This document shows, piece by piece, positions 1 to 45,046 of a stretch of 64,000 bases of DNA. This DNA is from Oculina patagonica (Eukaryota). The first letter of the stretch is position 1; every line of letters begins with the position of its first letter. The translations under genes and the position numbers were made by a program. The notes under the pieces were generated by a model. It ran no database searches. It had not been told where the DNA came from and worked only from the letters and a program-made list of their open reading frames with translations. Location: NCBI RefSeq assembly GCF_052425735.1, contig NC_135762.1, positions 12,834,001 to 12,898,000 on the forward strand. Reading direction: 5' to 3'.

Positions 1-225
1 CCCTGCAGGCGCGTCTGTTGGAGGGACTGGGGCATTCAGAAGCAAATTCAATTTTATAATGTTTTTAGCCACAACGTCCAACTGTCCAGAACAAGGTTGG
101 CCACTACTTCCAAATGAAAAAGCCACTACTTCCAAATGTCCAGAACAAGGTTGACCAAAGTTTGGTTCCTGACGCGCGCGGTGGCCGTTAACTGTAACTG
201 TAATTTTCTTCCTTTTTTTTTCAAG

Positions 226-12200: not shown

Positions 12201-14442
12201 GTTAAGACGGTGGACAGAAGTTTTTGGGTCAGCGGCAACGTACGAGTCACTGGCGCGAGCATTGCAGCATCCCATTGTGGGAAGAGCAGAACTCGCTGTC
12301 AAGTACTGTGATGTTTGCGGAGATCCATATCAAGGTAGATAGTTAAAAACTCCAGCGGACCTTAGGATTCTGACGAAAAGGGTTCAACAAATGATTAACA
12401 ATTTCATCTTAATGAATGCCCTTTACCCTGTTTTCTTATATAGCTAGCTTCACCAAACCCTTTGCTGAGATTGGTCATCCGTGCGGGCAGGGTGGTGGAA
12501 TTGCCTCCTGTGTCCCGCAGTAAAAATGTTGGTCTTTAAGCCATAAAATAAATTATTTACTGGCCTTTTTCTTTTCTTTTTTGCATAATTATGGACCTCA
12601 TCGATGCATCGATTAATTAGTACGCAAAAAAAGAACTTTCCCAAACCCGACCATCTTGATTTCACAAGGTTGGTCAATAACCTTATATCTGATGCAGTTT
12701 TAGATGTGGACACCGCACCTATCCCTTCTAAGACTGCTGATGTTTGCGGTTCGAGTTGCCCAGTTTTCCTGTCATACCAGTGGGATTTACAAGACACAGT
12801 GAAGAGACTGAAAAGCAGGATGGAAGAGAGTGGGATTCAATGTTGGATGGACATCGGACAAATGGGCGGTGGCGATGCTCTGTTTGCAAAGATAGATGCC
12901 GGTATTCGAGCGTGCAAGGTCAGATAAACTATTATGTAATCCTGACCATTCTTTCTTTGTTTCTTTTGGAAATCATAGTTCGATTTTGCCCTACAGTGAG
13001 CAGAAGGAAATGTGTCTTTTGTGATTGGTAATTGACGTTTTTCCCACTGGTTAAAGGGATCAGAAACCAAGAAAACCCAGTGTACCTGTGGTTTTATTGA
13101 ACCGGCTAACAGTTACATTGCAATCACGATATAACGACATTTGGCAGCTAAACAAATCTAACGAGTAAAAGGGACTATGTCACGGAAATCTCGCAGATTT
13201 TTGGTCTAAACTGTTCTGAAATTAGTGGTAGGCAACTTAACCCATAAAAAACAATATCTTTGAACATCTAAAGAAAGATATTACCTTCATTTGTGGATAG
13301 AAATCAAGCTACGGCTATAAATATCGATTTCTTGAAGATGCGCGGAAACAAATTGAAAACGTTTGCCTAACGTTTTCAAATTGCAATCCGTTTCCATCCG
13401 CACAATCCCCAGCTAATAATGCTAGTAAACAGTTTCAGTACTCTAATATAGCAATTTTGAATAAAAATGGACTATTATTTTTAGGTTTTCTGCGTCACAA
13501 ATATAAATTTTGGCTGTTCAAAAATCTGGTAAAATCCGTGACATAGTCTAAATATAGCTCTTTAAATATAGCTCTTTAACGAAATTGATATAACGAACGC
13601 CCTTGTTTTACACACCTCCCGTATTAACGAACCGTCTGGTGTAACGAAACTGGGGCCCGTTTCTCGAAAGACCCGGAATTTTTTCGGGTCCGCAAAGCCA
13701 TTGTAGTTACTGCATCTTAAAAACAGAGAAGTGTATGGGCCTGACAGTTTGTAGGAAGGGAACCCCTTTTCACATTGAAATATCATGGAATAAAATGGAA
13801 TAAAACAGCTCTGTGATCATAAAGTTTGAGATATTATCATGGCTTTCCGGGTGCGAAAACTTTTCGGGACCTTCGAGAAACGGGTCTCTGCTGACATATC
13901 AACTTTCTTTCCGATAGAACGAACTTCGTGATCTCAAAACTCCTGGTATAACGGACTTCCCGATAGACCGAACACCCTTGTAAAACTTACTAACAGATTT
14001 ATCAAACTACTGATATCTTCTAGATTCCCAGTATAATCTCCCGGTATAATCCAACTTCTATTAAAACAAAATTAAAACTAAATGCAAACAGTTGTATTCA
14101 ACTGGTTCCTTTATTTCTATAAGATAACCCGTTAGAACGAATACCTTTTGGACACATTGCAATTCTTTCTTCTTTTTTGTCCTGGCATAGGTCTTCGTTT
14201 GTTGCGTAACAGAAAAATACTGCCAATCAGACGCCTGCCAAGGAGAGGCCACCTTAGCTCATAGCTTAAAGAAACCCGTCATCCCTCTGTTGTTTGAAGA
14301 CATTTCCTGGCCTCCAGAAGGTCAACTCGCCTTGATCTTTACCAAGCTTCTTTACATCAAGATGACCGAGAAATATGGCACCATTCCCGATGCGGAGTTC
14401 CAGCAGCTTATGAGAAAAGTGGAAGAGTTTGTGAAACCCTGA
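226..14442 (+). CDS. ROCO-family gene copy A (5' exons outside window): pseudokinase C-lobe, SH3, Roc, COR, death domain, TIR
   Basis: Hand-spliced GT-AG exons with consistent phases: 226-399, 1695-1744, 2180-2294, 4200-4337, 4865-4974, 6753-6850, 6941-7323, 7766-8553, 9087-9336, 9800-10597, 11094-11133, 12023-12334, 12704-12918, 14191-14442 (TGA). Motifs: Roc P-loop GQARAGKT, STVGVEV, LWDFAGQ, VGTNAD; death domain LGTSWKMLGRTL; TIR VFLSY...CWMD...SDACQGEATLA...WPP. Confidence 0.9.
480..549. mobile_element. 70-bp palindromic MITE (hAT-like)
   Basis: TAGCCTCCCACGCAGTCGTTCTTAGGG...CCCTAAGAACGACTGCGTGGGAGGCTA, with an 8-bp TSD ATTTTATA at 472-479 and 550-557. Confidence 0.8.
3118..3532. mobile_element. 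Hairpin MITE interrupted by a SINE
   Basis: Outer inverted arms (agatgtaaaacgc..cattaa / ttaatg..gcgttttacatct) and inner inverted arms at ~3408-3440 / 3465-3498. Confidence 0.6.
3165..3406 (-). mobile_element. tRNA-derived SINE
   Basis: The minus strand has an A box TGGCTCAGTGG, a B box GGTTCGATTCC and a GGGTTTTTCTCCGGGTTCTCCGGTTTCCTCCC central domain typical of invertebrate SINE2 families. Confidence 0.8.
5459..6026. mobile_element. Tc1/mariner-type MITE
   Basis: TIRs CAGTCAACTCTCTCT...AGAGAGAGTTGACTG, TA at the left flank, and reiterated subterminal AAGACGGACACCT motifs. Confidence 0.75.
10645..10870 (-). mobile_element. 5'-truncated SINE (paralogous copy at ~42175-42400)
   Basis: SINE body/tail (..CCATCGCAGGGTTACCCCCCAGCAT..CATTTATAC..CCCAAGGACACAAC), nearly identical in the same intron of both gene copies. 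Confidence 0.6.
11554..11917. mobile_element. TTAA-targeting (Kolobok-like) MITE, copy A only
   Basis: TTAA|AGGGGCTATGTC...GACAAAGCCCCT|CTAA. The empty site TTTTAAGGC is at ~43141 in copy B. A related element lies at ~13170-13550. Confidence 0.65.
13170..13550. mobile_element. Second member of the same Kolobok-like MITE family, copy A only
   Basis: AGGGACTATGTCACGG...CCGTGACATAGTC. The body aligns with 11554-11917 and is absent from the copy B intron. Confidence 0.6.
13653..13887. mobile_element. PIF/Harbinger-like MITE, copy A only
   Basis: GGGCCCGTTTCTCGAA...TTCGAGAAACGGGTC with 3-bp CTG flanks. Confidence 0.6.
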
Positions 14443-19571: not shown

Positions 19572-19737
19572 NNNNNNNNNNNNNNNNNNNNNNNNNNNNN
19601 NNNNNNNNNNNNNNNNNNNNNNNNNNNNNNNNNNNNNNNNNNNNNNNNNNNNNNNNNNNNNNNNNNNNNNNNNNNNNNNNNNNNNNNNNNNNNNNNNNNN
19701 NNNNNNNNNNNNNNNNNNNNNNNNNNNNNNNNNNNNN
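19572..19737. other. Assembly gap (N run)
   Basis: Run of n characters. Confidence 1.
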
Positions 19738-25083: not shown

Positions 25084-28000
25084 ATGAAGGCTATTGACAC
25101 ATTCTTCAAGAGGAGACCCGTGAGGCTACAAGAAGCTGGGTCAGCTGAAACTAAAATCAAGTCCAGTCATGATGCAACCAAGGTTAGTTTGGTTATTGGT
25201 GGGTTGTCAAATTCGTTTGTGACTCAAACTAAGATTTTTAATCCATCAACATGTCTGAATACATGTATTCTTGCTAATGTTCAATCATTGGAAAGATAAA
25301 TACATGTACCAGAAATTGATCTTGAGATGTGGTCCTCTCAGGTTTTAATATAAATGTATTCTAAAAACAAACTTGCACAAGTTCTGCTAGTGTAATTTGA
25401 TGTATTTTACTTTTAGGATTTTGCAGCTAAATTCACTGACCTGGACAAGCTGTACTTGGCTTTGGCTGAAGTTGGTAAAGGTTACCACTTTGGTACATTT
25501 TGCTACAGTCTCAACATTACCAGCTTGAGTGCTTTAGAGAATTATAATAGTAAAGACAGCACCGTATTGGTTCCTGATGAAATCGATAGGATAAAAAAGA
25601 AACTTAAAAGATCACGCTTCAATTTTGAAGACCTTGCTCAGGTAGGTACCAAATGAATGCAAAATAAATGTGTGATCACATGTGTAATCACACATTACTT
25701 TTTGCATAGGAACTGTAGGTGAACAAGTAAAAAGATCATTATATTTAGTTAATACCAAGGCAAAGTACATGTACTTTTTACATAACGATGCTTATCCTCG
25801 GTGTAAAGACCAGTGACCTAAAACAAAGGACTACTAAGACAACAAAGAACCTTGAAACAATATAGATCAGGGAAACGGAAGCTCCAAAACAAAGAAAAAA
25901 TTTACAAGTTCTTTTTACATAGTTAAACCCCATAATTATTGTGCATTAATTTCAATCACATGCAATCAACTGAGGCGCAAAGAATGATTTGGCTCAATAT
26001 TGTCTACCAAAAATATTCCTGTGGCCATTTTCTTCCTAAGGGTACCTACATGTATTACTTTCCTTTTGGAAGTTGACGAGAAGTCTTTGGACGATTTCCA
26101 ACTTGACTCGAAGTTTTCCGAAGAATTCCGAAGTTGACTCAACACTTACGAAGATTTCCAAAGGTGATCCAAGACTTGTTGAGTTGAAACAAATTCTTCC
26201 GAAGATTTCCCCGGGTTGGCCTGAAAACTAAGCAAGGTTTTTGGAGTTTACTCGAAGTATTCTAAAGACGAACTAAGAAGCAGTAACATTTACTGTTCCA
26301 AACGGTCTTGAATGATATAAAGTATGGCTATATATTTGTAATTTTGTTGAGTATACTGTATTAAAAAAATCTCACGACCTTCTCTAACAATTCGTGATTA
26401 ATAGGTATGAGTGATGTTGTGAAAGTTCTCAAGATTACACGAGCCTTTGCACAATTAATTTCAAACACGACAGCTATAATCATTTCTTCAGCACACGGTA
26501 CATTACTTCTCAGTCGTTTTCTGATTCGTGGAGGCATCGAGGTCGAATTGTAAGGGCGCTGGGCTTGAAATTTAGAGATCATGGGATAAATTATGTTTTG
26601 TCCAGTTAGTTGGTGTTGTTCTCGGTAGTCCTTGTATCACCCATAAATGTAATAAAAACCATAAATGTAATACCAACCATAAATGTAATAAAAATGGACC
26701 ATAAATGTAATACTAACCATAAATGTAATAACTTTTAACCACAAATGTAATAAATCCACTAACCATAAATGTAATGAAATTTGCCCATAAATGTAATAAA
26801 CTGAACAACCATAAATGTAATAAGGCTTAACCATAAATGTAATAAACTGGCTACGACTTCCAAGTAAGGGGCCACAAGTGATAATATAAATGAGACAGGC
26901 CTAACGCGACTCCCGCTGGTTGCTGAATGTTACCCTTCGATCTGTAAACGGAGGATTTAATTAACGCTCTCTTGAGCCATTTCAATGATGAACTTTATGC
27001 CATTGTGTTTGCTAGCTCTGTGGCATATTCGTTAGGTTTATTGGCTCCTGTTTGTTCAGAGATTCTTAATAGCCTTTAAAGGAATGTTGTAGTCTACAGT
27101 AGCATCGGATCAGTAGATTTCTAACTGTCAACAGTGGCAGTTAGTTCGTATGATAACGTTTCGTTACCACGGTTGTGAGGGTCTAAGATCCGATTCTTTT
27201 AAAGGCTTATGCAGTCTCTAAGCATTGCGAGCGATGGTTTCTTTGATGTTAAGCTCCCCTTAGTTTGAGTGGTTGTGATTTGTGCTCTGGGAGCTATAAC
27301 ACTTTACCTCCATTGTTTTTTATCTGTTTTGTTGGTTACTTGCATCCAGCAAATAAATTCAATCTATAGCAGTTTAATCACTGCATTTGAAGTCTCTAGG
27401 ATGCTGCAACGATGTCTCTTGGCAAATGCTTTATCTTAAGCAAGACTCGAGTTTCGGTCCTTCAGTGGACCTCATCAGTTGCTCCTTTATGTTGAAGTCT
27501 CATCGAATGATTTGAAATCATTCGATTTGCCTTTTTTGTACTTATGTATCTGCAGGATCGAAAATTCTGTTTTTTGATTGGCCCACTTAACTGGACCAAT
27601 TGTGTTAATGTAGTTTCGATCCGTGCTTAAGTGTGTTTGTTTAGAAGGCTTTTTTTTTTTCGTATTTTTGACCGTTAAAGGTCAGTTCTGATGCTAAAAA
27701 GTGGTTCTTATTTAGCCGTGCGAGAGTAATGTTCCAGTTAATGAAGAAAGGCTTCATTTGGTATATAATGCACAGCGTTCGTTTGACTATAGCATAGATT
27801 TTTTGCGATCAAGATAATCTCGTGCAACACAGCGGAACGGAGCACTGTCAAAAAAAGGTCACAAGCGATAATATAAAATGAGACAGGCCTAACGCGACTC
27901 TCGCTGGTTGCTGAATGTTTGTTTCTTAAAGGGGTCACAAAGAGCTTGAGCCAGGCCTTTAGGGGTATAATCGAATAGTCAATTTCTCGAAAAGTTTGTG

Positions 28001-30250
28001 GCCCCTTACTTGGAAGTCGTAGCCAGTTTATTACATTTATGGTTAAGCCTTATTACATTTATGGTTGTTCAGTTTATTACATTTATGGGCAAATTTCATT
28101 ACATTTATGGTTAGTGGATTTATTACATTTGTGGTTAAAAGTTATTACATTTATGGTTAGTATTACATTTATGGTCAATTTTTATTACATTTATGGTTGG
28201 TATTACATTTATGGTTTTTATTACATTTATGGGTGATACAGTTGTTTTAATTTCTTTTTTTTTTTTTTCATTTTTTTTTTTATTGCAACACAAAGAACAC
28301 TACTTACAAAACAAAAACATACACTAGTTACAATACTACTTACAAAACAATACTTAAACTACACTACTTACTATACAATACTTTCATAAACTACAGTTTT
28401 TTCACTACTTTTATACAGGTTTTTTTGTACATTATTTGCTTTATAATACAAGCTTACACATTAGTAACAATACACAACAATACAGAAATAACAAAAATAT
28501 CCTGAGTTTAATTCCTAGTTCCGTTTTACACACTGTCAGGAGGGGCAGACCAGTTAAAATTGGTCTGCCTCCTGACAGTTGGAACATTTACCATGTTTAG
28601 ATTATTTACATTATGTGTTTCTGTCAATGTTTGTGTATGAATGTTGGTCCTGAAAAGTCCCATTCGGGGAGTGGTCAATTAAGATATAGTATTTCAAAAA
28701 TAGATGAGAACTTTAAATGAAGCGAGCCAAATGTGTAGAAAAGAAGTGAGAAAGTAATGGTCTCTCATTTTATCTTTTTCAGAAATACAAGCAAACTAAT
28801 ATTGTTAAAGAGTGTAAAGTCAAACGCATACCAATGATCCCAAAGAAAGATGTAACTGTGACGAGGAACATAGCACTAGGAGAAAACCCAGCGACAGGAT
28901 ATGTGTGTGAAGCCCAGTGGACTAAACCTGATGACACTAAGGTTGGTCTCTACAGTCATTTTGCACTTGAATAGCATTATTTGTTTGCATTTGTTTTATT
29001 TGTTTTTTTTTTTATTTTCAGGAAAAAGTGTGTCTTAGATATGAAGTAGGTGATAGAGAAGAATTCCTACATGAGGCAGAAATGGCAAATCTACTTTGTC
29101 ACCAAAACGTCCTTGCTATCCATGGCGTGGTCATTGCCAGTTCGTATGCACCTATGTTGGCTTTAGTAAGTTATTAATTAAGCTACTTGTTAACCTCGCC
29201 TTCATTCCTTATCTCCGTTAGTGGAGTCATTAATTAATCACTTGGAAGAATTGTCATGATAGAATTAGAATGTATGACTTCGGTCATATTATCGAATGCC
29301 GGAATACCTGGAACAAGTCAAGAAGAAACATTGTTAACAGTAGAGGGTGGATATGCTTGCGTATGGTGGGATTTTCTGAAAAACGTTGCTCGGGTTTAAG
29401 ATTTAATGTAATAACGTCAACTTTAACTTCAGTTCCTGCACAAAATGCACCAGATTACAGCTTTTTCCACTTAATAGATTATTTGCAACAAATTTGGGAT
29501 GTGTGCTTCGGTTCTTGCATTTCATCCTTATTCTTGACTTTTTGTGGGCTCGTTTTTTTTTAGACTATTTTGCTTGTTAAAGTAAAATAGTAAGAATAAA
29601 CTCTCAAGGGAATGTTTTAATTTCTCAAGGGAATACTTTTCGCTGTTGGTGATAAAAACGTTACTCAAAGGAATGCGAACACTTCCGATCCCGAACTATT
29701 ATCTATTGAAAGCGAGATGTATAAATAAAGTTCGTTTTTTCTTGTTTGAGGAATCATTGTTTATAATAATTTCCCTATGTTGTTACCCACAATTATTTCC
29801 CCTTTTTACGTCTTCTTATATTTCTTTCCATGTTTCACGCAAAATAGTTGGTAGATCTCCAATAGATCTTTGAACATGGGATCACGGAAGTAATAAAAGC
29901 TCAAGCGCAGTTTTAGGTACTTGATGGTAAACAGCCTGTGAACAAGATCTTTAGCTCACTCAGGTCGCATCATTACTTTTCGAGCTTAACCTCCAAGGAA
30001 ATTTTTCATAGAATGAAATAAATATGAAGGTAGCTACATGTCACACATTAACAAAGGAAGCGATTATAGCCATCAAATGAAAGTATAATAACTACGTCAA
30101 AGGCGATAAAAAGTAAATAAGTATCGCTAAATAAGTAAGTATATATTGCTTTTGTGTATGGAACTAATTGTGACATCATAGAGATAAATGAATCTTTATT
30201 CAATCAATCAATCAGTCAATCAATCGATTGATTCATCCATCCATCCATCC

Positions 30251-30290
<40 letters not shown>

Positions 30291-33200
30291 ATGAATCGAT
30301 GGTGTGAATCGATAAATCACCGGATCCTCATTTGTCCCAGTAATATTACAGAGGTTCTATATTGTCCCATATGAATTGAGAACTCCCAACAAACCCGTTC
30401 GGGCTCTCAATTTTTGCCCATTCAGCTTAAATAACTGCATGCATGGTGTATGTTCTTTTTCTTCATTGTCAAGGTGGTGGAGTTTGCGAAGCATGGACAT
30501 GTTATAGAATTAGAGCAACATCACACTGTTGAAAGACTATGGAAATATACAATCCAAGCTGCTACTGCTTTGGAACACCTAGAACAGAAGAAAGTCATTC
30601 ACAAGTCCGTCGAAGGGTTTAACTGGTTCGTTGTTGCAGATTACCAGGTAAGTTCAACTTGAGATCTGTTTCGTAGACTCACCATGTTGTTTGCCGCCGG
30701 TAAAACACAACAGTCGGTACCCAGCCGGTAAGATGAGTCAAAATAGAAATGACGAGTAAAAACGTACACCGATACTAGGTACTTCAGTAAAATAAGGTCC
30801 ATTAAGAGATCAGTTATCTCATTTTTCTTTTTTCCAAAATGCTGTCTTTCTACCGATTTTTTCATCATTCGTACAGAGCCTGTTATACCGGTTTTGTGGA
30901 GTTCAAATTTGGTGAGATATTTGCAGTCAGTTCGCGCGTCATTTGTACTTTCTGAAGCAGAATTGAACAACAACAACAACAACAGTAATGATAATTTCGT
31001 GCAAAGGAACTTTAAAGTGACGTTCATGAAATGTAACTTGCGTTCCTAAAATGCAAAAAGGTATAATCTGAAATTTTATTATCTTTTTATCGCCAGTTGA
31101 AGCTTGGAGGCCTTGCATATTGTGGATTTGAGAGTCAAGTGTTAGTATGTCGTTTTTTTATTTATTTTATGTATTTATTTATTGTTTTTTTATGTTGATG
31201 ATACATTGTACATGTAATCTTGATGCCAGCGCCCACGCGGGTATGTCTGCCAACCTTTACTATCTCTCCTGGCCTTGTGCCACAGCTAATTCTTTTATCG
31301 AATGTTGGTTTTTCTAGCTTGGTTTATTTTATCTGGGTATGAATCTTAGCCCTTGCCCAACTCTCTTGTCATTCTCATCTCTGCTAGTGAACTGATTTGC
31401 GCCAAGATTGAGTGAGCGACTTGACTTGGGTAATTTCTATTTTAGTCAAATTTATGTGAGATGAACACTGAACTGTTAAATCGAGGGACGTTCTTTCCTG
31501 TTACGTAGCGCTGTTTCTTGAGCATTTAGGTCACTTAAAGGAAATCGCTAGCCGGCTTAAGTATTGCTACAACCAACAGCGATCAACCTTTTGAAACTGT
31601 GCTGGCGTTGATGCTGTTGTGATGACTTTGCTTGCTAGATTTTGAAAAAAAGCCAACATGGCGGCACGTTCTGCAATTGGGCTCCTCAACATGTAATTTT
31701 TTACCAGTTATCGACGAGTTTGAAGAAGGTCATGATGCCTACCTGGCAACTAATGATATTCGCCCCACAATGACTGAAACTCTGAAGAATTACTAGCGCC
31801 AGAAGAGGCCACTGGTCAACGAATATTTGCCTTCAGAGTGAAGTAATTATGTGATGCTATTTGTTCACTGGGCTGCTTGGGGCCGAGTTCTAGCATAGTG
31901 TGCAATACTGCAATACAAATTACAGAGTGTCGAAGATAGGAGGAGCCAAGTCCCTTTTTTAGTACACCTTGGTGTTTAACTTTGCAGGGGAAACCAAGAT
32001 GCCCATTACATGAAGAAGGTCGTGGTTTACCAGTTTGCCAAACTATTTGCTGGCACATTTGCCAATTATTTACGACAGCGTGCAGACGTTTCATCAATTC
32101 GGGTGAGTTATGATTGTGATGTTTATGATTACGATGTCGATGATGATGATTATGATTTATTATTTTATTAATCATATCTATAACAAATTTCTCGATTTTG
32201 ATTGGTTCTACGCACACCTACTTGTCGTGTAATTGGCGCGTGATCATGTCAGTATCCAATTACAGGTATCTAATTTGAACAACTTCAAATTAGATACCTG
32301 TAATTGGACAGCTACGCCATTCGCTCGTCAATCACGCGCATATAAATGGTTCTTTCTTGCCATTTTCCCACTGTTTGTACAACCAGTTGACTTTACCATT
32401 GCCTTTTTCACACTTAAAAATAGTCTCAAAGACTTCCTAACCTCGAATTTTGTTATTTATACGATTAATTAGTAATTGGACCTCGTGTCGTGTAATTCAG
32501 AGAGTAATCGTGCTCGTAATTTCAAATCGACCTCGCGCGCTCGGCCGATTTTAAAATTACTCGCCCGATTACTCCCTGAATTATACTCCACTCCGTTCAA
32601 TTACTTTTACTTATTTTTGCATATATCAATGCTGGGTGTTCCCCTTGCAAACGCGTTATGTCGCAAACAGAATGGGTTTTGGTAAGAATCCTGGTAACGT
32701 GCTTGCTGTGTGTGAAAACAAAAATTAATCAATAATATTCTGTGGATAGCCCTACGAAGAATGTAGGGGACCGCGTAAGCAAACTGAAGAAGGTCAAGAC
32801 CATATCGCAAATTTCTGTTCTTCACCTTCTAAAGAAAATTATGCACGAGGTAAAAAAAAGCAATGTTCGTAACCAGAACGATCATACAAAACAACTCTTT
32901 GTTTGCTTGAAGAAACGGAGATCAATAAATCTTTCATTTGAGCTAAATGACAACCTCTAACACATCTTTTATCGTTTTTTATTTCATATTTTATAAAAAA
33001 GAGACATGTTTGTAAATGGCAAATGAGTTTGTAGCAATAAGTACGTCCTCCCTCCCGCACGCACACACACACACACATGCGCGACCAAAATGATTTCAGT
33101 AACTACTGCCAATCCACGGAGAGGATTCGTATTGACGTTTTTTAGTGTTCTGAAGGGATTGTTAGAAGATAATTGATGTAATAAAAGGTCATAGAAATCC

Positions 33201-36200
33201 ATTGGCCACATGAAGAGATACGTTATCGCAGATTGAGCATGTTATATTTTTCGCTCGTTCGAAACTCATTCATTTTCACTTGCTCTTTCTTTTAGGCAGC
33301 TTCAAAATCACAAGATGAAGTACCGGTTTTTGGTTCCCTTTGTCCTACGCATTTTTACGACGTATTCAGGCGTTGTTTGCAAATGAATCCAGATGAAAGG
33401 CCCTCGTTTTCGGAAATCAGGCGATCTCTTGTTGCAGAGGTAAAATTGCTTTTATGTTATCATTAAGATTTATGGTGTCAACGCTAAATGTATATATCTG
33501 AACGAATTCGCAGCAACCTGGCCGCAAAGTTTTCGCTTGCGAGTTCAAGCCCATCTAGCAGCCTTAACTTGTTGGGAAGGGGGGGGGGGGGGGGGGGGAG
33601 AGGGGGAGGGGGTGCTTAATGTCAGGAATGGTGTGGTGGTCTTGCCCTGGGTCTGGAGTATCCGCTGGTGCCTAGCCGTCAAAAGCTGGGGAAAAGGGAA
33701 GATGCCACTTTAGACTACTGGACCTAGCTAGGCTTGGGCTTGGGCTCTATTGAGCATGTCTGTGTTAATTTTGAATGCCTTGTGTTGATTGTGAATATTT
33801 TGAATAACATTGCTAGGGGGTTCCCTGTATAGAAGTCACCCTGCTGTTGTAGCAGGTGTTACCTGGGCTCATGACGTCCCAATCTCTAGCCAGAGGGGAA
33901 GTCAAAGGACTTGTAGCAGTCTGGAGTATTTTGGGAGATGGGTGTCCAGGTTCTTGAAATATTACTCAGATATATATTGCTAATAACAACACGTACGAAG
34001 GAGTCATTTACCGGTTAACCCAGTACAAAACAGAGTAAGGCTCGCTGCGGTATAAGGAGAGGGAAAATAGGCTCTCAACTCTTAAAATCCACAAGTTAAG
34101 AGACTGGAATTGTGCAGAATGGTTTTTGCGTATTTGTTGCCAAATGGTAGGGAAAGTCTTCAGAAATACGTCCTGAAATAAAACAACAACAACAAAAGTA
34201 CACCTTTATGTTCCCTTTAGTGTCTGGGTCCGATTGCTTAAAGTATCTTAAGATTAAGTTGGATTAGCCTGTGTACAGCCGTCACGCTCCCCTTAAAAAA
34301 ATTCTCTTTCGCGATTATTTTGAGTGAAGGGGAATTTGGTGCAACCATTCCCTGTGTTCCCCAAGGTCGCCTTGCACACTATTGGGAATAAATCAGCCAA
34401 AGGTGGATTGAAGTGTATGGGAAACAATGCTGAAAAAATCATTAGAAACCCCGAGATCAGTTGAGTACAGAAAAGTATCATACAATTTAAGTCTGTTGTC
34501 AGAAACCATTTTTGGAGGAAGGTAACGTTACATAACGTAATGAATTTATTGTCAATGGCTGGTTTTGCGTCTTATTCAAGAGTAATCGAAATTTAATAAA
34601 GTAGTGTGTTCAGCCTCAGTTATTCTAGTGTTCCTTTTATAACAGGAGCAACCTTTGAAAGTGAGGGTTGTTAGCAGCTTCAGTGCCGCGTCAGAAGGGT
34701 TTCTAAGCTGTGATGCTGGAGAGCTTATAACTGTTATCTCCAAGGACCGTCATAGGTACGTTATGAAAGAATGATTGTTAAGAAAGTATGACTACGTATC
34801 GCGGAATATTATATAAACGCTTCATAGTCTCAGTGGACACTTAAGGACGCCTAAGGAGGGAAAAGTGGCGAAAGATAAAAGTTTTTTTCCGCGTGTATCG
34901 CAAGGATTTCACACGGCATTACATGTACTGCATGGTGATTGGCTTACGCAGACGGTATTTTTAGTGCAGAATGCACTATTGTGATGGTTTGGTGGGCTGT
35001 CGTCTGCTAAACCCCTAAAGCTTTAAAGCGCTAAAGCACTATAGTGTAAACTTTTGATCGCCAATTAATTAATTAATGTCAACTAATTAATTATTCCTTG
35101 TGGAGGGGGTGGCGGTGGGGAGCACCTGACCATACACCCCAGGTAAACTCGTGGAACATATCTACGTTACTTTCATATGAAGATTTCAAGGGTATATATT
35201 TGTTTCAGAAAACTCTTTGTTCTCTTTGTGGTGCTATTTTTTCTAGAGGAAAGTACTTTGCGCCAAACGCATGCGCAGATTAGTCTATTTACGATACTTA
35301 TAATTGAAGAGCTCAAAGGTCTATATTTGTTTAGAAAGCACTATACTCTCCTTGTGGTACTATTTTTTCTGGAACAAAATACTTTGGCTAAACGCATGCT
35401 CAGATTAATATGCGTCACGAACATCGCATGTTTCTTCCTGCGGAAGGATTCCTGTGGACTCAGTGGCGCAAAGTAAAAACCGCAAATTAATTGAATTAGA
35501 CACTAATGCGCTTACGGCAGTTCATGTGAAATAATTCTTGATATGGCAACGCTGTGATCTAGCATCTACAGTGTAGTATGATTCAGAAAAACCATTTCTT
35601 GCATTAATCGATAATATCTGATCTGTGTTTTAATCGATGTTGCCCTGTTTGCAGAAAATAAATCAGGTTACCATGTCAACACGCTACGTACGTTTTTGAC
35701 AAAAACAAAAGAATCATGTTACACATGTTTTCTACAAAAACAAAAGTATCATGTTACAAAAGTATCTCGTTTGCTGTTTCAATATCAAACTGAAATTCAA
35801 ACTAACGAAAATTAAAGTATCAGGGACGTGTTTAGAAATCTTGTATCAAATCCTCACGATGTGTGCTTTTCAATGCGGTAGGATTCTTGTAGAATCCGCG
35901 GCATTAATTTAATTAGACTTTTAGGCATCACAGCGGTCTAAGTGAAAAACAAAAGTATGATGTTACATCCGTCACTTCCTTTCCTTTGATTTGTTCTCCA
36001 TCGCTTAAACTAACTTCTATATTATTTTGTAAAACCTTTGCCTGAGAGGGGCTTCGTGTGGAAGCGAGACAACTCTCTAGTGTTCGAACACGCTTTCGTG
36101 ATGGTTCCGACATTTCTTGAAAGAAATCTTCACACTTCGTGCTTCTCAGCTTCGTGCTTGAGTAAGCATGTGACATGTTCACCAGACCGTGGTGAGAGCA

Positions 36201-39200
36201 TGACCTGGCGCACAACATGCTTTAGCGACAATTTCGGAGAAAAGCCGCAATTTCGAACATTTTATGCTTTGTAATTCATAATTTGTGCTCTGCTCGTTGA
36301 TTTGCCATATTGCATTCTGCACTTCCCTTTGAGTCTCTGAGTTATTTAAGTTCACGTCGTCTTGGTTGAAATAAACATCACTTTTCCTCACTGGACACCG
36401 AGTCTCAAAGTTGTTGTGTACCAAATCCAATAACATCAGCTACTCTGCAAGATCGATTGGACACTGTTTACGACTTTCGTTTTAGGATTTCGGAATTCTG
36501 GGCGTCGGCAAGCAACTCAGACGATTAAAATTCAGTCCTTTTGAGTATTATCTGTCAAGAAAACGTTTTCAGTGAATTGCACTAATTATATGCCCTTTTG
36601 CTGTATTAGCACGGTAAGATTCTTTTCGGTATGCTTCGCGGTCATGGTTCGCAGGCGCATACGCTCTACGACGTAAGGTAAAGGTTAATGTAGGTTTACA
36701 TCTTGGATATTGGACATCCATACTATGGTCAAAACAAGAAATACGCTGACCAGTATCATATAGCCATATAGTCAATCTCATATAGTCACGGGCTCAGGTG
36801 TGAAACTCATCGAAGTTGCGTGTTTTTGAAGTTGACCGTTGACCAGGTAATGGTTTTCCATTGGATCGCTGGCTCAAGCCGATTCGCTCAAGTTCGTTTC
36901 GTTTAAGTCGGGCAACGTAAATAATCTGAGAGCTCCGCTTTTAGCCTTGGCTTAATCTATTTAATACTCTGTTGTCCTATTCCCATTAATGTACGGTACT
37001 TAATGTACAAGCAAAGGATCACGTCGATGAAATGACACAAGATTGGTCAATTTCTGATATACTTACTTGCAGGGATGACAAGAATGCCTGGTTTGGTGAA
37101 ACAGAAGACCGAAAAATTGGATTTTTCAAGAGCGAGCATGTAGAGGAACTACTGGACGAGAATATTGATGGTAGGTGCAGGGCAATAGAGTACCTTTTCT
37201 CTCGAGATGGTTAAAACTGCACTGTTAAGTTTTTACGACCAGGTAAATATCCTTAATTATTTTGGTTTTCAGATACAGCTATACCACCAGAGATTCGTGC
37301 ACGAGGCCCCAGAGCCGAACTTGCTTTTCAAAATGCCCTGCGGAATGGAAAAGTGAACGTGTACCGTGGTCGCATTATGTTTCTTGGGCAGGCCCGTGCA
37401 GGGAAAACGAGCCTGAAGAAATCACTTCTTGGCATCCCGTTCAACCCTGAAGAAGAGAGTACCGTAGGAGTCGAAGTTGACCCATCCAAGTGTGAAGTGG
37501 ATGTTGAACAAGTTAGCAACTGGCAGCGCACGAAACAAAGGAAGCTTGATGTCTCTGAGTTTGCTGACGACATAGCAAGGATAATCGCTAAAGACTTAAC
37601 AGAAACAAGTTTAGTCGAAAAAAGCATCGATGACGCTGATTCGAACTTGGAGCAGGTAATAAGTTAGCTTCTAATGCCACTTTTAAACTCCATGGAAACA
37701 GTTTTTAACCTCATTCAGACAGGTATTTTTATGGGGGGGGAAGGGCTTTTTCACAACCAGGGGGTCAGGCGATTTTTGCCCACCACATGTACGTACCTCT
37801 ATGGGTATTGAAGCTATGATGATAGGGGTGTATAGTATCTCCAAAACAAACTGGTCGGTTGACATGATGACGTTTTGATGTCGTCATGGCTTTTGAACAG
37901 CCGCCATCTTGGACGGCATGCAAATCTGATGTTCTTGACTTTTTGAAATTAGAAAACGACTTAAAGTAAGACAAATTTGGAGAACATGCCTGTTAAAACG
38001 TAATTTTTTTGATAATATCAAGTTCGGTTTAAAAGATAATGTCAAAAGTACACTTGTAAGGTCTTTTAATACAAAAAAAGGTTTACACTCCTTATAAAAG
38101 CGTGAACACTAAAAAATATGTCTGGAATGTTTGTGTTTAGCCAATCACATGCGAGAACTTCAGACCGCAGAAACCACAAACAGTAAATGGGTTTCCATCG
38201 GTCACGGAGCAACTTTAGTTCTTATTTTGTTTCAGGATACACGCTCTGTCTTTTTTAAGAATTTAAAGAACTGCTATTCTTTCGTATCGAGGGCCACATC
38301 CAGAACATGGTTTCAGGGATTTTTGAAAGAAAAAAAGGACGGTTTCTCTAGCGACGATATACGACATGGTTTAGTGCATGCAGTATGTTGTAGACATGTC
38401 TAGACATAAGATGTAAACGCGATAAACCGAATATAAAATACAAAATTGTGGAGTTTTCGTTACTGATTGTAAATCTTTTCGGTAGAACAAGGGATTCGAT
38501 TTATTTCGGCAAACGATTTCAACCCTTAGGCAATTAGAGGTTCCGTGATCGTAAGACTGCAAACTGCAAAGGCTCCAACGAAAATTATTCAAAATGTTGG
38601 CGTGATTGGTGCAAAATAAACACCTCAATCGCTCAATCGTTTGATTTTCGCTTTTCCTTCCCGCTATCGTTTCGCTGTTATCGAAAAAACAAACCTTCCT
38701 TCTATCAGTGTTTAGGTCTGCTACAATAGTTGGGGTGAGATAAAAACCGGAAAATGCAAGCTTATCTCAGTACAAATTGTAACATGCCATCAGGCGAACG
38801 GTAACTGCAGATACGAATTCGTTACAATTTTTGAAAATTGGCGGCAACTGGGGCAAATCGTAGCGTCGGGCGCATCGGTTTTTCAATTTTTTCTATAAAA
38901 AAATCACTCAAACCTATTCTTCAGTGGAGCAGTGAATGTTCTCAAAAAGGAAGGAATTACAATTAGTGTGTTTACTTGTAAATTGGAGCGAAACGAGAAC
39001 CAAATATTGTTCCGTGACCGATGGAAACCCATGTGGTTTCTGCGGTCTGAAGTTCTCGCATGTGATTGGTTAAAAGACAAAGAACATTCCAGACATATTT
39101 TAAGTGTTCACGGTTTAATAAGAAGCGGTGTAAATGAGCAACACGTTCTGTAACAGTTTTGCTTATTGTCTCTTTTACTTCCTATATTTCCAATTAGGGG

Positions 39201-42200
39201 AACAGGGATGAGGTGGATGCTGGCGGTCCGAAGGAATTAGAGATTTCACTGGACATAGCCAAGCCAATACAAGAAACAAAACAGGAGAATGAGGCATCAG
39301 TTGGAGACCCTACCGCCACTGCGCTAGTAAGAAGCGAACCAGCAGAGCTAGATATTCAACTGGGTATTGATACCACTGCAGTTTTGCCGAATGACGTCAC
39401 AGATTTGGTTGTGCAATACTTGCAAGATCTGAAGTTGGAGGACAACATAAGAACAAAGGAAGCAATTTTAACTCTGTGGGATTTTGCCGGGCAGCACCTT
39501 TATTATGCATCCCATTCTGTTTTCCTCTCCCCACGAGCTATCTACGCCTTGGTGTATAACCTTAGCAGAGATCTGAATGCTCCAGCAGAACCTTGTGTCA
39601 GACAGGGCATTCACGACATTGTTCTGGAAAATCCAAACAGTGAGACCAATTTAGAGAGTTTGTTGACCTGGTTGGCCTCTGTTCACAGTATTCGGCCAAT
39701 AACGGATGAGGCTGCTAGTCATCAGGAAGGGAAACTAGCTTACCTCCGTCCTCCAGTGTTTATTGTAGGTACTAATGCAGATAAACCTTTTGAAGATATC
39801 AAGAAAATGGAAAAGTGCATTCAGAAGAGTATTACGGGAAAGGCGTACGAGAAGCATGTAATTAGGCCATTCTTTGCTGTTGATAACACAAGATCGTTTA
39901 GTGACGATGGGGTTCAAGCACTTCAGAAAAGGGTCATGGAGGTGTTGAAACAGGAGCCGTACATGGGTGAAGAGGTGCCAATAAGGTACTTTGCTTTAGA
40001 TTCCAATTCCAGGTGTCAAATAGTAACAAGAACGTCAGTTGAATAAGTCGATAAAAAAATTAAATGCTTAAGAAAAACCATTGCCAACTTGTGTCTGTTT
40101 GCGTTTCAACAACTTTCTCGTTAACTCCCTGTAGTCCTTGAACTGTCTAACTGAAAAACAGAAGTCGTCAAAATGACCTGACCCTTGATTGACTTGCTAC
40201 CTAGAATGCAAAGATGTGAAAGTGATTTGTTATTATAACATGTACAATTATTCAGCTCAAAAGTCTTTTCAAAAGGGCAAGCAGCAAACGAGTGTATTTT
40301 TTTGTTTGTTTTCCTTAGGTGGTTTACCTTCGAAAAAGTCGTCGAGGCTTTAGTAGCAAAGGAAACCTATCACATGGATCTTGATCAGCTCCTAGCTGTC
40401 ACAAGACGAGTCTGCCGCATAGACGACGGGGAAGAATTAACAGCCATGTTGAATTTTTATCATGATCTCGGAGTGATCGTAAAGCATGGCCATACTGTTG
40501 TGCTGCAGGCTCAATTGTTGATTGACCTTTTCAAACAACTCATTACTGTGCGACCCTTTGATGAGGTGGTAAGCAGAGATTTCCCTATGAACTCTATATT
40601 ACTTCTGGGCTCGGAAGAACTTGCCATATGATTACTCATAAAGTTCAGTGTCATTTTGGCCAGGCCTAAATCCCAGCTTTTTTATAGACCATCGGGAATC
40701 TTAAAACGAAATTTTCATACAGCAACATTTTCACCTTTCTCCTTCCATTCTCTCCTATTTAATTTCATTTGTCCAAAACGGGACGTCACTCTACATAAAA
40801 GCAACATTGCCTATCTTTAAGCACAGTGTAGGCTCTAGTTTACTCAAATGTGCACTAAATTCTTACGAAAATGCCTCTGAAAGACTTGATTCCCACTCGG
40901 TTACAAGGCGGAGGTATACTTGAAGGCCGTTTATCCACCGCTTAATATCGAATATCTCGTTCGCCTTTCAAGCAATCCAAACGAATCTACAGTGTATTTT
41001 TTTTTGCGGTGTTTTGAATATTTTTGGCGATATTTGGGAGGAAACAGTTTTTCTCAAAGGACTAGTAAAATATAGAGAAATAAGAAATATTCAAGATTAT
41101 ATGTGATTTGAAAATTAGAATTTGAAGTTAAAAATTAGTTAGTGGACACCCAACCAGTCCCCTGACAACCTGGAGCGCTCTTGGTGGTGTTCTTTATTGT
41201 ATCCCTTTTTCAAAACCTCTTAAAATTTCATTCAAATTCACTTTTACCCCCGCCTCAAGTGAGGTGGCCCATGAAAACAAAAAACTCACTCTACGGTACT
41301 TTTCTTGTCATATCTTTATTCAGAATCCTCTGTACTCAGAATGCTGGCTGGAACTCGAAGAAAGTGGTATTCTCAGGATGACTCTTGTCGATCACGTTTT
41401 CGCAGATTTCATTCAGAAAGGTCTTTCTAAGGAGGACGTTTTGGATACGATGGAGCTCTATGGGTTAATCGCCAAATTTTCCTTTGTTCCCGCGGTTGGC
41501 GAGCAGGAACAAAGATATTTTGTGCCTGCCCAGCTTCGATCATCCCCTTCAGGTCTGTGCGAGATAAAGCCCTCTAACAGCGATCCATGCCCACTGTATC
41601 TCCATTTCCTCGATGGATTTGTCCCTCATGGACTATTTCCTCAGCTGCTGTCAAGAAGTATACGCTGGTGTTCTGAACGCGGTCCCAAACAAGCTCCTAA
41701 TTTATACCAAAATGGGGCAAGGCTTTTCATTGGCAAGCAGACCATTTACAATCTGATTCTTATCTGCAGAAAGAGATTCATCAAGATCATTTTGAAGCAA
41801 AGACGTCCTTCTTCAGCACCTCCATTAACTGCATCAGTGGAAATGGCACGCGACGTTCGCCTCTTTCTGGAAGATACCCTACAAGACTTGTCACACGAGT
41901 TGTCCTGGTTACGTAACCTCCGGTATGAACTGTGTGTTGCTTGCACCAGTTGTTTAAAGGAAAGTAAAGAGTGCATCAAGCACAGAGAAGTCTGCTGTGC
42001 TCACGATGACTGTCTACATCTTCTCCGTGTGCTTCCTGAAGAACAGCTGATATGCCCGAAGAGCTTTAGCGATGATACAGTTGAAGTTCGTGGATTGGAG
42101 AAATGGTTCCAGGGCCATAAAACGGAGGTACTAATTCTTTCAAATTTTCTTTAACTTAAGTTGTAAATCATTATGTAAGGTGAAGGGTAAAGTCTGTGTT

Positions 42201-45046
42201 TGAACCTAGTGGTCCATCAGGACAGAGCTTATCGCGGTTTCCGTAGCATTAAAAGACTAGCAGTATTCTTAATCCTCTCTGGACGAGATACTAGTCCATC
42301 GCAGGGTTACCCCCCAGCATCACATTCGCCGGTACTCATTTATACACCTGGGTGGAGAGAGGGCATTATGAGAGTAAAGTACCTTGCCCAGGGACACAAC
42401 GATTATTCAGTTGCAGTTTAATCCTGAATTTCACCCAGTATCGTCTGGTAGAGATGAGTTTTTTTTTTTATTTCCATCAACATTCTTGGTATCCTCAGTG
42501 CTTGGTCTTGCAGGACATGCTATATTTCAAGTCTAATTATTTAACATCTTTGTCTAAACCTTAACATTCAACAGCTGTCTTTTCAAGCTATTTTTTTTAT
42601 TTACTTTCTCTTTTTTTAACATAGATTGAAGAACAGAGAGTGGCTTTTCTGGCTCCTGAAGGTAAGAACAATGTGTTCTTGTTAATCATAAGAGCATGTG
42701 ATCTATGAGCAATATACAATGCGGCCCCTATACTTGGAAAATTTGGAGTAATTGCAAAATATCATCCGCGATGTATCAGCATGGTCATCAAAATCAAGTT
42801 CACGCTACTTTTTTACGTAGTTATAAATGCGTTATTGGCTCTGTCGAGCTATACTAAGAACTAACTAAGAAGAAGAATCAAAGAAAGAGGAATAAAACAA
42901 TGGAAACAAGTTATTTCAGCGAAGCGTCGCGTGACGACCCAAAAGTGGCTGCGTAGGAGACTACAGGACCTCCCATTGGCAAATAATCGTTCGCATGCTT
43001 CATGCTTGTATAGGACTAAGTGAACGTCAGTTGTTCAGCTGACAGCTGTAAGAGAGATTCTCCAACGAAAAATGTTTGCTTTTGTTCCGGTTTGCAGTTT
43101 GAGTAAGTTTTAAATTCTACTAAATTTAGGTCTATCTAATTTTTAAGGCGCCCATTTCAACAATGCACCGTTACTGAATATACCTTAAGGAGTCTTTGTA
43201 ATGTACAGGATTGATCATGTCAACAATTGTTATTGTTGCAGCTTCCATAGCTTTGGAACAACCACCATCCAAATCCGGCACACCTTCAACCGACGATCTT
43301 CTCCTTCTTGCCTTTGAGCTGGGCACCTCATGGAAGATGCTTGGCCGAACCCTGGCTCTTCCTGAGCCAGTGCTGGAGCAGATTGAAGTGGATAACCCTC
43401 ACCTATCTGAGAGATGCTATGGCGTGTTAAGACGGTGGACAGAAGTTTTTGGGTCAGCGGCAACTTACGAGTCACTGGCGCGAGCATTGCAGCATCCCAT
43501 TGTGGGAAAAGGAGAACTTGCTGTCAAGTACTGTGACGTTTGCAGAGATGCATATCAAGGTAGATAGTTAAAAACTCCAGCCGACCTTAGAATTCTGATG
43601 AAAAGGGTTCAACAAATGATTACCAATTTTCATCATAATCGATGCCTTTACCCTGTTTTCTAATACCCGAGCAGGCAGGATAGTGGGATTGCCTCCTGTG
43701 TCCCGCAGTAAAAATGTTGGTCTTAAAGCCATATAATAAATTCTTTACTGACCTTGCTCTTTTTCTTTATGGCATAATTATGAAACTCATCTTAGATCTA
43801 CATCTCGATCCATTAACACGCAAAAAAGAACTTTGCCTAAATCCAAACATCTTGATTTAGCAAGCTTGGTCAATAACCCTTATATTTGATACAATTTTAG
43901 ATGTGGACACCGCACCCATCCCCTCTCAGACAGCTGATGTTTCCGGCTCGAGTTGCCCAGTTTTCCTGTCGTATCAGTGGGATTTACAAGACACAGTGAA
44001 AAGACTGAAAAGCAGGATGCAAGAGAGTGGGATTCAATGTTGGATGGACATCGGACAGATGGGCGGTGGCGATGCTCTGTTTGCAAAGATAGATGCCGGT
44101 ATTCGAGCGTGCAAGGTCAGATAAATTATTTTGTAACCCTGGCCCCTCGTTCTTTGTTTCTTTCTTCTTTGTTTTCGAAATCATAGTACGATTTCGCCCT
44201 ACAGTGAGCAGAAGCAAATGTGTCTTGTGATTGATAATTGAACGTTGTTCCCTCTGGTAAAAGAGATCAGAAACCAAGAAAACCCGGTGTACCTGTAGTT
44301 TTATTGGACCGGCTAACAGTAACATTGCAATCACGATATAACGACACTTGGGAACTAAACAAACCTAATGATTTAAGAGATATTACGTCATATGAACTCT
44401 TTAACGAAGATAGTATTAAGAACGTCGTTGTTTTACACACCTGCTACATTAATGAATCACCAGATACAACGAACCTGCTGAAAAATCAACTTCTTTTGCG
44501 ATAGAACGAACTTCGTGATCTCAAATCTCCTGGTATGACAGACTTCCCTCTATAACGAACATCCATGTATAACTAACTGGCAGATTTATCAAACCTTCGG
44601 GTATCACTAGATTTCCGGTGTAATCTCCCGGTAATCTAACTACTGATAAAACAAGATAAAAACTAAATGCAAATAGTTATATTCGACGGTTCTTTTTCAT
44701 TTCTATAAGGAAGCCCGTTAGAACGAACTCCAACTTACAGCGAACATACTGTTTGAACAAATAACAATTCTTTCTCCTTTTTGTCCTGGCATAGGTCTTC
44801 GTTTGTTGCGTAACAGAAAAATACTGCCAATCAGACGCCTGCCAAGGAGAGGCCACCTTAGCTCATAGCTTAAAGAAACCCGTCATCCCTCTGTTGTTTG
44901 AAGACATTTCCTGGCCTCCAGAAGGTCAACTCGCCTTGATCTTTACCAAGCTTCTTTACATCAAGATAACCGAGAAACACGGCACCATTCCTGATGCAGA
45001 GTTCCAACAGTTGATGAGAAAAGTGGAAGAGTTTGTGAAACCTTGA
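25084..45046 (+). CDS. ROCO-family gene copy B, apparently complete (1449 aa): SAM-like, ACK-type pseudokinase, SH3, Roc, COR, death domain, TIR
   Basis: 18 coding exons: 25084-25182, 25417-25641, 28783-28941, 29022-29165, 30474-30647, 31097-31140, 31988-32102, 33296-33439, 34646-34755, 37073-37170, 37273-37655, 39198-39985, 40319-40568, 41324-42127, 42625-42661, 43251-43559, 43901-44115, 44795-45046. They sum to 4350 nt with no internal stop. Intron phases match copy A and exon lengths match or differ by 1-2 codons. The start exon is the least certain. Confidence 0.87.
26633..28240. mobile_element. Foldback-type element with ~245-bp TIRs built of tandem ACCATAAATGTAAT motifs (intronic)
   Basis: Arms 26633-26877 and 27996-28240 are near-perfect reverse complements with TGT...ACA ends. 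There is no coding capacity inside. Confidence 0.8.
30198..30288. repeat. (TCAA)n/(TCCA)n compound microsatellite
   Basis: Direct reading. Confidence 0.9.
38086..39130. mobile_element. MITE with ~120-bp imperfect TIRs, copy B only
   Basis: TA|CAC...GTG|TA. The arms 38086-~38208 and ~39012-39130 are reverse complements. This accounts for the intron being ~1.1 kb longer than in copy A. Confidence 0.7.

Follow-up and report, generated by a model that had tools for sequence, protein, structure and literature searches.

What does a protein do that joins a tyrosine-kinase-like module to a GTPase and to Death and TIR domains, and where did that module come from? The question is raised by a gene on chromosome C5 of the coral Oculina patagonica, which lies in a stretch of 64,000 nt (C5:12834001-12898000) referred to here as the window; positions are counted within it unless a chromosome is named. 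The gene occupies window positions 25084-45046 on the + strand (C5:12859084-12879046), and its 18 exons form a single frame that encodes, in order, SAM-like, tyrosine-kinase-like, SH3, Roc, COR, Death and TIR_2 domains. It is one intact, spliced, protein-coding gene, and the scleractinian, tandemly triplicated counterpart of 'Novel Gene 3' (NG3) of sea anemones, a family that is already catalogued. New here are the ACK origin of the head, supported by structure searches and shared introns, and its predicted dead catalytic state. The product is probably a cytosolic ROCO protein with an input head, a GTPase switch and a Death/TIR output.

The coding sequence of 4347 nt (1448 codons and a stop) contains no internal stop or frameshift, and all 17 introns are GT..AG. 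The model was drawn from GT/AG sites, frame continuity and alignment to relatives. The nearest stored proteins are the paralogues P0256 and P0250, 81-88% identical to the product of the gene, and P0256 was used as a stand-in for structure and profile work. The exons are as follows, with Pfam scores in bits and, for AlphaFold2 (AF2) models, the predicted local distance difference test (pLDDT); P0151 is a Nematostella protein.

25084..25182, + strand: exon 1, start codon and N-terminal leader of 33 codons, phase-0 donor; ATG frame, 73% identity to P0256 residues 1-33, disordered in the AF2 model.
25417..25641, + strand: exon 2, SAM-like five-helix domain with the motif LYLALAEV...LNITSLS; AF2 pLDDT 84.8, weak Foldseek matches to SAM domains.
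28783..28941, + strand: exon 3, linker followed by the kinase N-lobe, whose glycine loop is degenerate; collinear with P0151 and P0256, the following phase-0 intron in the column of the coral ACK intron.
29022..29165, + strand: exon 4, beta3 (VCLRY, with Arg for the VAIK Lys), alphaC, which keeps its Glu, and beta4-5; PK_Tyr_Ser-Thr 15.4 bits, the following phase-0 intron in the ACK column.
30474..30647, + strand: exon 5, from the hinge to the catalytic loop, with HKS in place of HRD and no catalytic Asp; PK_Tyr_Ser-Thr 24.3 bits (profile 79-138), family alignment.
31097..31140, + strand: exon 6, micro-exon of 44 nt, DFG replaced by GGL, phase-2 end; splice and frame enumeration, 87.5% identity to P0256 residues 267-282.
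31988..32102, + strand: exon 7, kinase C-lobe with the alphaF region, without APE; conserved with the paralogue, a contig of run X1 joining 32103 to exon 8.
33296..33439, + strand: exon 8, end of the kinase domain, CP..Y......PDERPSF; PK_Tyr_Ser-Thr 22.6 bits (profile 228-258), joint 33437>34644, phase-0 intron in the ACK column.
34646..34755, + strand: exon 9, first half of SH3, phase-2 end as in ACK; SH3_2 16.9 bits, joints in runs X1 and X3.
37073..37170, + strand: exon 10, second half of SH3, phase-1 end as in ACK; SH3_2 15.7 bits, joint 37169>37272 (GT..AG).
37273..37655, + strand: exon 11, Roc GTPase P-loop (GQARAGKTS) and switch I; Roc 31.9 bits, a loose contig end at 37656 running into the letters of exon 12.
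39198..39985, + strand: exon 12, acidic insert, Roc G3 (DFAGQ) and G4 (TNAD), start of COR-A; Roc 28.7 bits, 1148 relatives in the representative library.
40319..40565, + strand: exon 13, COR-A; 16 bits on the exon and 32.5 on P0256, 67% identity to Nematostella P0151.
41324..42127, + strand: exon 14, remaining COR (COR-B region) and a Cys/His-rich tail; 47% identity to P0151 over 270 residues, no Pfam match on the exon.
42625..42661, + strand: exon 15, linker micro-exon of 37 nt that restores the reading frame; splice and frame enumeration, peptide matching P0250 residues about 1176-1188.
43251..43559, + strand: exon 16, Death domain; Death 41 bits, nearest solved structures THOC1, RIPK1 and TRADD.
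43901..44115, + strand: exon 17, N-terminal half of TIR_2; 36.5 bits.
44795..45046, + strand: exon 18, C-terminal half of TIR_2 with the putative catalytic Glu (CQGE) and the stop codon; 30 bits, the Glu aligned with that of Cat1 CWDE.

The two micro-exons are needed for the frame, and P0256 and P0250 match both. A GC donor in exon 14 and the acceptors 43209 and 43242 for the Death exon were considered and dropped; the 37-nt micro-exon agrees with the paralogue proteins. The longest introns reach 3.1 kb, and the intron between the second SH3 exon and Roc measures 102 nt. The peptide strings on which an earlier reading of this DNA (the original prediction) was built all lie in open + strand frames where they had been placed, and its 18-exon transcript stands, the 1449 residues then counted including the stop. 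That prediction also spoke of a receptor, for which the model offers no support, having neither a signal peptide nor a membrane segment. Separately, intron 2 contains a perfect 245-nt inverted repeat (26633-26877 and 27996-28240, 100% complementary, arms 1118 nt apart), which has the look of a foldback or terminal-inverted-repeat transposon inserted very recently.

Splicing across the head was examined by comparing contigs of four public runs, guessed to be RNA, with positions 31950-37949. Spliced contigs skip 33437>34644 (GT..AG), which joins the end of the kinase C-lobe to the first SH3 exon. They also skip 34752>37070, which becomes the canonical 34755/37073 after a 3-nt shift and joins the two SH3 exons, and 37169>37272 (GT..AG), which joins SH3 to Roc; one contig continues from 37656 into the letters of the exon at 39198. 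The contig of the fourth run is unspliced, and that run is therefore taken to be DNA. The contigs are 93-99% alike to the window and may come from a paralogue or a sister species; what they document is how the family is spliced, not that this particular copy is expressed.

Full-length, collinear proteins with the same domain order occur in Nematostella, Calliactis, Actinostola, Oculina and Pocillopora, and many anthozoan RefSeq sets annotate the family as 'uncharacterized protein'. The single 4347-nt frame, the contigs spliced from kinase through SH3 to Roc and these relatives agree with the earlier claim of one gene with this order of domains, and the search that it called for in cnidarian proteins finds the same string in anemones and corals alike. 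At the orthologous locus of Pocillopora damicornis a product of 323 aa (P0266, in the P0162 cluster) is recorded as 'high affinity nerve growth factor receptor-like'. This may be a short isoform consisting of the pseudokinase head alone, and its receptor name is probably misleading.

The architecture had been thought undescribed, which did not hold up. NG3 was reported with Pkinase_Tyr, SH3, Roc/COR, Death and TIR in Aiptasia, Calliactis and Nematostella (van der Burg et al., 2016, BMC Genomics 17:850; PMC5094078), and the coral gene has all of these domains, in that order, in one protein collinear with Nematostella and Calliactis NG3. That study treated NG3 as lineage-specific, in three actiniarians only, noted Neuralized-headed relatives in Strigamia and Crassostrea, gave a dN/dS of 0.094 and proposed MyD88-like signalling; the kinase-Death-TIR part had been seen earlier (Poole & Weis, 2014; PMC5094078). 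The words pseudokinase, inactive, catalytic and Ack are absent from the text of PMC5094078, which names no SAM-like domain or ACK ancestry, and no literature linking the family to ACK was found in an incomplete collection of papers.

The loss of catalytic residues is uniform. In an alignment of 18 N-terminal modules from anemones and corals, the VAIK Lys is an invariant Arg and the HRD Asp and DFG Asp are gone in every member; the present gene reads HKS and GGL at the latter two motifs. The APE motif is absent, while the alphaC Glu and the core of the C-lobe (CP...RPSF) are retained. The domain is still recognizable as a kinase, PK_Tyr_Ser-Thr scoring 24.3, 22.6 and 15.4 bits on single exons and 70-85 on P0256/P0250. 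In place of the competent tyrosine kinase domain of ACK/TNK proteins there is one without the VAIK Lys, the HRD Asp or the DFG Asp, and judged by these residues it is catalytically dead across the family, as had been predicted for this gene.

Gene structure is the strongest line of evidence for descent from ACK. The coral's own ACK gene was located by a SAM_TNK match of 85 bits (C6:25771148-25771315) and its first eight exons were worked out. Their intron phases (0,0,0,2,0,0,2,1) all recur, eight of eight and in the same order, in the gene under study, which has one further intron, of phase 0, just ahead of the degenerate DFG. When ten sequences are aligned, the column coincides exactly for four of the eight introns, those preceding beta3, preceding the hinge, within the C-lobe and between kinase and SH3. 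The remaining four are offset by 2-23 columns, all in gapped stretches; they follow the SAM exon, interrupt the shortened activation loop, split the SH3 and follow it. Other kinase genes of the same genome served as controls: the FAK gene reads through all four assessable kinase intron sites and an Abl-like gene through all three, and in a Fes-like gene two sites are absent and one is in a different phase. These controls were stitched from tblastn pieces and are incomplete near junctions. The Abl-like gene was taken from the PK_Tyr scan and named by motifs only, a profile search for the Abl marker F_actin_bind giving no match.

Structure searches are much clearer than sequence scores. The AF2 model of P0256 residues 1-445 has a pLDDT of 84.4 and a predicted template modelling score of 0.81, and its ten best Foldseek matches among Swiss-Prot models all belong to the ACK/TNK family: ACK1 from four mammals, TNK1 from two, SID-3, ARK-1, and Drosophila Ack and Ack-like. 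These have E-values of 1.6e-23 to 8e-21 and align from residue ~1 to ~458, over SAM, kinase and SH3; the next family, Tie2, follows at 8e-16 over the kinase only. Among solved structures the Ack1 kinase+SH3 chain (4hzs_A) comes first at 1.5e-19, with MET at 1.9e-15. By sequence, ACK1 is narrowly the best natural match of the Nematostella module in the PDB (39.8 bits; FAK 38.3, CSK 37.6), and the family profile reaches 110.7 bits against 4hzs because a single continuous alignment spans the kinase into the SH3. The SH3 itself (SH3_2, 16.9 and 15.7 bits on the exon halves and 33.5 on P0256) follows directly on the kinase and is predicted to pack as in Ack1.

The case for ACK is weakest at the N-terminal domain. 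Pfam finds no SAM domain in the gene or in 16 relatives, and hhalign gives no match between the SAM-like exon and the SAM of coral ACK (probability 0.7%). When modelled alone, the domain gives weak Foldseek matches (E 0.3-6); nearly all are to SAM domains, and ranks 2, 4, 6 and 7, none of them significant, go to ACK1 residues 2-75. The best Pfam match of a distant paralogue (L004) is SAM_TNK, with 19.4 bits and E 0.0011, below the cut-off of 25. The gene product is only ~22% identical to coral ACK. Taken together, the structure searches and shared introns support the copying of a three-domain block from the ACK gene, introns included, followed by strong divergence, and they bear out the earlier description of the SAM-like/kinase/SH3 head as ACK/TNK-like. 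Since it has neither catalysis nor the CRIB, Mig6-homology and UBA tail (none found in Pfam scans of P0256 and P0250, where Roc-COR-Death-TIR follows the SH3 instead), the protein has an ACK-derived head without being a member of the ACK family.

The middle of the protein is a Roc GTPase with a probable COR after it. Roc scores 31.9 and 28.7 bits on its two exons (cut-off 27) and 51 on P0256, and the nucleotide-binding motifs can be read in the model: the P-loop GQARAGKTS, DxxG in DFAGQ, and T/N-x-x-D in TNAD. The nearest solved Roc-COR structures are the Roco proteins of Methanosarcina (M. barkeri) and Chlorobium (C. tepidum) and LRRK2. The COR-A region is 47-67% identical to relatives that score above the Pfam cut-off (P0028 44.6, P0076 50.9 and P0081 57.8 bits); COR-B has no Pfam match on exon 14 and a weak one in P0081. 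Leucine-rich repeats (LRRs) and ankyrin repeats are absent, as the original prediction had noted.

The output end comprises a Death domain (41 bits on the exon, 35 on paralogues), nearest in structure to those of THOC1, RIPK1 and TRADD, and a TIR domain. The order Death then TIR is that of MyD88, but the TIR matches TIR_2 (36.5 and 30 bits on the exons, 74.5 on paralogues) far better than the animal TIR profile PF01582 (16.8 bits). Its nearest solved structures are the NADase-type Cat1, then PdTIR and AbTIR, and its CQGE, of the (W/C)xxE pattern, aligns with Cat1 CWDE. It is a bacterial-type TIR_2 that retains the putative NADase glutamate and may cleave NAD+.

Three tandem + strand copies were found on C5 by a genome scan with the pseudokinase-SH3 part (12832264-12848439, 12859084-12879046 and about 12904734-12925748), and the gene under study is the middle one. 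The upstream copy can be entered as follows:

1..14439, + strand: gene1, paralogue of the same architecture with its 5' end cut by the window; ~100% identity to P0250 / KAL9972483.1 and LOC144655584.

Exon by exon, the DNA of gene1 and of the gene under study is 72-90% similar. The third copy lies just past the 3' end of the window and is closest to LOC144655583. Between gene1 and the gene under study is a run of 166 N (19572-19737). A distant relative of the P0160/P0165 type lies 6 Mb away on the same chromosome (C5:6.85 Mb; L004:1399-1728, equal to C5:6853592-6853921), with a kinase N-lobe-like exon 5 kb downstream of the SAM_TNK-matching N-terminal exon.

The rate of nonsynonymous substitution (dN) and its ratio to the synonymous rate dS (omega) were compared by region between the gene and its upstream copy. 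Values of dN and omega are 0.243 and 0.42 in the kinase, 0.093 and 0.25 in SH3, 0.061 and 0.28 in Roc, 0.037 and 0.12 in COR, 0.033 and 0.18 in Death, and 0.017 and 0.11 in TIR, with an overall omega of 0.23. The sequences thus give a fast-evolving head, a pattern that may be sensor-like, to which gene conversion in the tail may contribute.

A mechanism can be proposed from these parts. The dead ACK head would be the input and would offer a partner or a pathogen factor either a surface to bind or a decoy, and the GTP cycle of Roc-COR would gate dimerization or oligomerization, as it does in other ROCO proteins. The output would then arise once the Death and TIR domains cluster, whether by a MyD88-like death-fold/TIR assembly, by NAD+ cleavage or by both, with immune signalling or cell death as the possible outcome. 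ACK-family kinases control endocytosis, and SID-3/TNK2 control the uptake of double-stranded RNA and viruses. A speculative and rather doubtful extension is that the head is an integrated decoy: a pathogen factor aimed at host ACK would bind the pseudokinase copy, release Roc-COR and fire the Death and NADase-TIR domains. Such a decoy would have been kept since the common ancestor of anemones and stony corals and would be diversifying by tandem duplication.

Several points weigh against the picture of an ACK-headed, GTPase-gated switch. The spliced contigs differ from the window by 1-7%, and that their runs are RNA is a guess. COR-A falls below its Pfam cut-off of 35.3, with 16 bits on the exon and 28-32.5 on paralogues. 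When the family profile is scored on kinases only, ABL (104 bits) and FAK/PYK2 (about 102) precede the ACK1 kinase-only chains (<99.5). The SAM is without significant sequence support in this gene. Four of the shared introns lie in indel-rich loops and can therefore be matched by order and phase only, not by exact column, and the Fes-like gene may share intron i4 (C-lobe, phase 0, within one residue). In a maximum-likelihood tree of 36 kinases (LG+C20, kinases sampled from this genome), the family has a long branch, falls with the tyrosine kinases at the split from Ser/Thr kinases (97/93) and is placed outside all those sampled, as their sister. The grouping with ACK that the original prediction expected is not recovered there; on the other hand, forcing the family into a clade with ACK costs only 3.97 log-likelihood units and is not rejected by the approximately unbiased (AU) test (p-AU 0.168), and the tree is uninformative on this point. 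Finally, dS is higher in the kinase part (0.58) than elsewhere (0.16-0.31), which points to gene conversion in the 3' half, and the contrast between head and tail would then be overstated.

The main rival explanation, which we consider unlikely but which survives best, is that the protein is a downstream adaptor rather than a sensor. It would form a MyD88-like Death-TIR bridge in TLR/IL-1R-like pathways, the head serving to dock and Roc-COR to tune availability. The Death-then-TIR order is indeed that of MyD88, and this is the reading of the authors of NG3 themselves (PMC5094078); molluscan ROCO proteins with Death and TIR domains have likewise been filed as MyD88-like, in a survey of Aplysia. 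ACK proteins are also known in general as scaffolds with many partners. Against this stand the TIR_2/bacterial NADase type of the TIR domain, with its low PF01582 score, and the divergence of the head, 4-14 times faster than that of the tail between paralogues. The genes moreover form a tandem array within a family that swaps heads, a pattern typical of sensors rather than hub adaptors.

An origin of the kinase-SH3 head outside ACK is improbable. It would require a generic cytoplasmic tyrosine kinase and an SH3 to have been joined independently, with convergent domain order, and it draws on the higher kinase-only scores of ABL and FAK, on the failure of the tree to unite the family with ACK and on the SAM domain without a significant sequence match. 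The recurrence of all eight ACK introns, including those at the kinase/SH3 boundary, within the SH3 and after it, argues against such convergence, as do a Foldseek top ten made up of ACK/TNK proteins over three domains and five orders of magnitude ahead of the next family, an AU test that does not reject a clade with ACK, and the SAM_TNK match of the distant paralogue. That two adjoining genes, a small kinase/SH3 gene and a Roc-COR-Death-TIR gene, or a decaying pseudogene have been misread as one is scarcely credible and already largely refuted: the long introns, the fresh transposon-like repeat in intron 2 and the short Pocillopora product might suggest it, but splice joints run from kinase through SH3 to Roc, the last of these introns is only 102 nt, RefSeq models of paralogues and orthologues cover all domains at full length, and the frame is open over 4347 nt with an overall omega of 0.23.

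The switch reading remains the preferred one. The gene belongs to a wider repertoire. Word-indexed protein searches with P0022 and the head of P0151 returned only 2-4 relatives because the head is too divergent for them, and the Roc-COR region was therefore used as the query. This core is common, at 40-60% identity, to ~100 or more anthozoan proteins (P0005, P0024, P0028, P0068, P0076 and P0081 are examples). Heads attached to it include NACHT, a GT4 glycosyltransferase, LRR+OTU, TPR, HEPN_DZIP3 and DED+Macro, with ZU5 also among the partners, and the tail may be Death, TIR or caspase. Little seems to have been written on this combinatorial ROCO repertoire. As a separate observation, dozens of exons on C1, C3 and C4 match PK_Tyr profile positions 116-187 with identical boundaries, which indicates a large expansion in this coral of one tyrosine-kinase family, probably of receptor type.

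To our knowledge, anthozoans rely on innate immunity alone. Their Roc-COR set is large and barely studied, with heads and tails swapped like those of the nucleotide-binding leucine-rich repeat proteins (NLRs). Here, a block of three domains appears to have been copied in its entirety, with its introns, from a housekeeping tyrosine kinase gene, then inactivated and kept across sea anemones and stony corals. This opens the hypotheses that the pseudokinase acts as sensor or decoy and that the Roc GTPase gates a Death or NADase-TIR output, and the counterpart gene LOC5519167 makes Nematostella a tractable model. The family also bears on how death-fold and TIR domains were wired before MyD88-centred pathways became fixed. 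The value of the gene lies in evolutionary and mechanistic insight, not in a new class of system.

Among known systems, NG3 is the closest. Nematostella LOC5519167 and Calliactis A0A1D8RAC4, for example, have an identical domain string, and the coral protein is collinear over its whole length with P0151 and P0157 at ~50% identity; it differs in coming from a scleractinian, where it is one of three genes in tandem. The bilaterian Neuralized-Roc-COR-Death-TIR proteins (Strigamia, Crassostrea, Aplysia 'ROCO MyD88-like', Priapulus, Argopecten, Owenia) have a homologous core at 27-31% identity and the same Death-TIR_2 tail, but their head is a Neuralized homology repeat where that of the coral is an ACK-type pseudokinase module. 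LRRK1/2, DAPK1, MFHAS1 and prokaryotic Roco proteins have a Roc GTPase followed by COR, as the coral protein probably does, and in DAPK1 the Roc is likewise preceded by a kinase and followed by a death domain. In contrast to these classical ROCO proteins, the coral protein lacks LRRs and ankyrin repeats, its kinase is dead and tyrosine-like rather than an active TKL or CaMK kinase, and a TIR domain has been added. With the ACK/TNK kinases (ACK1/TNK2, TNK1, Drosophila Ack, C. elegans SID-3 and ARK-1) it shares the order SAM-like, kinase, SH3 and a similar predicted fold of that module, whereas the catalytic Lys and Asp are lost and Roc-COR-Death-TIR replaces the CRIB, Mig6-homology and UBA tail. 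A last likeness, drawn from general knowledge as an analogy and not as homology, is to plant NLRs with integrated kinase or pseudokinase decoys and to guarded sensors of the ZAR1-RKS1 type, which similarly combine a nucleotide-gated switch, a death or TIR output and a dead copy of a host kinase. The plant switch is an NB-ARC ATPase, whereas that of the coral is a Roc GTPase; if the decoy reading is true, the coral gene would be an animal, GTPase-based counterpart of the integrated-decoy receptors of plants.

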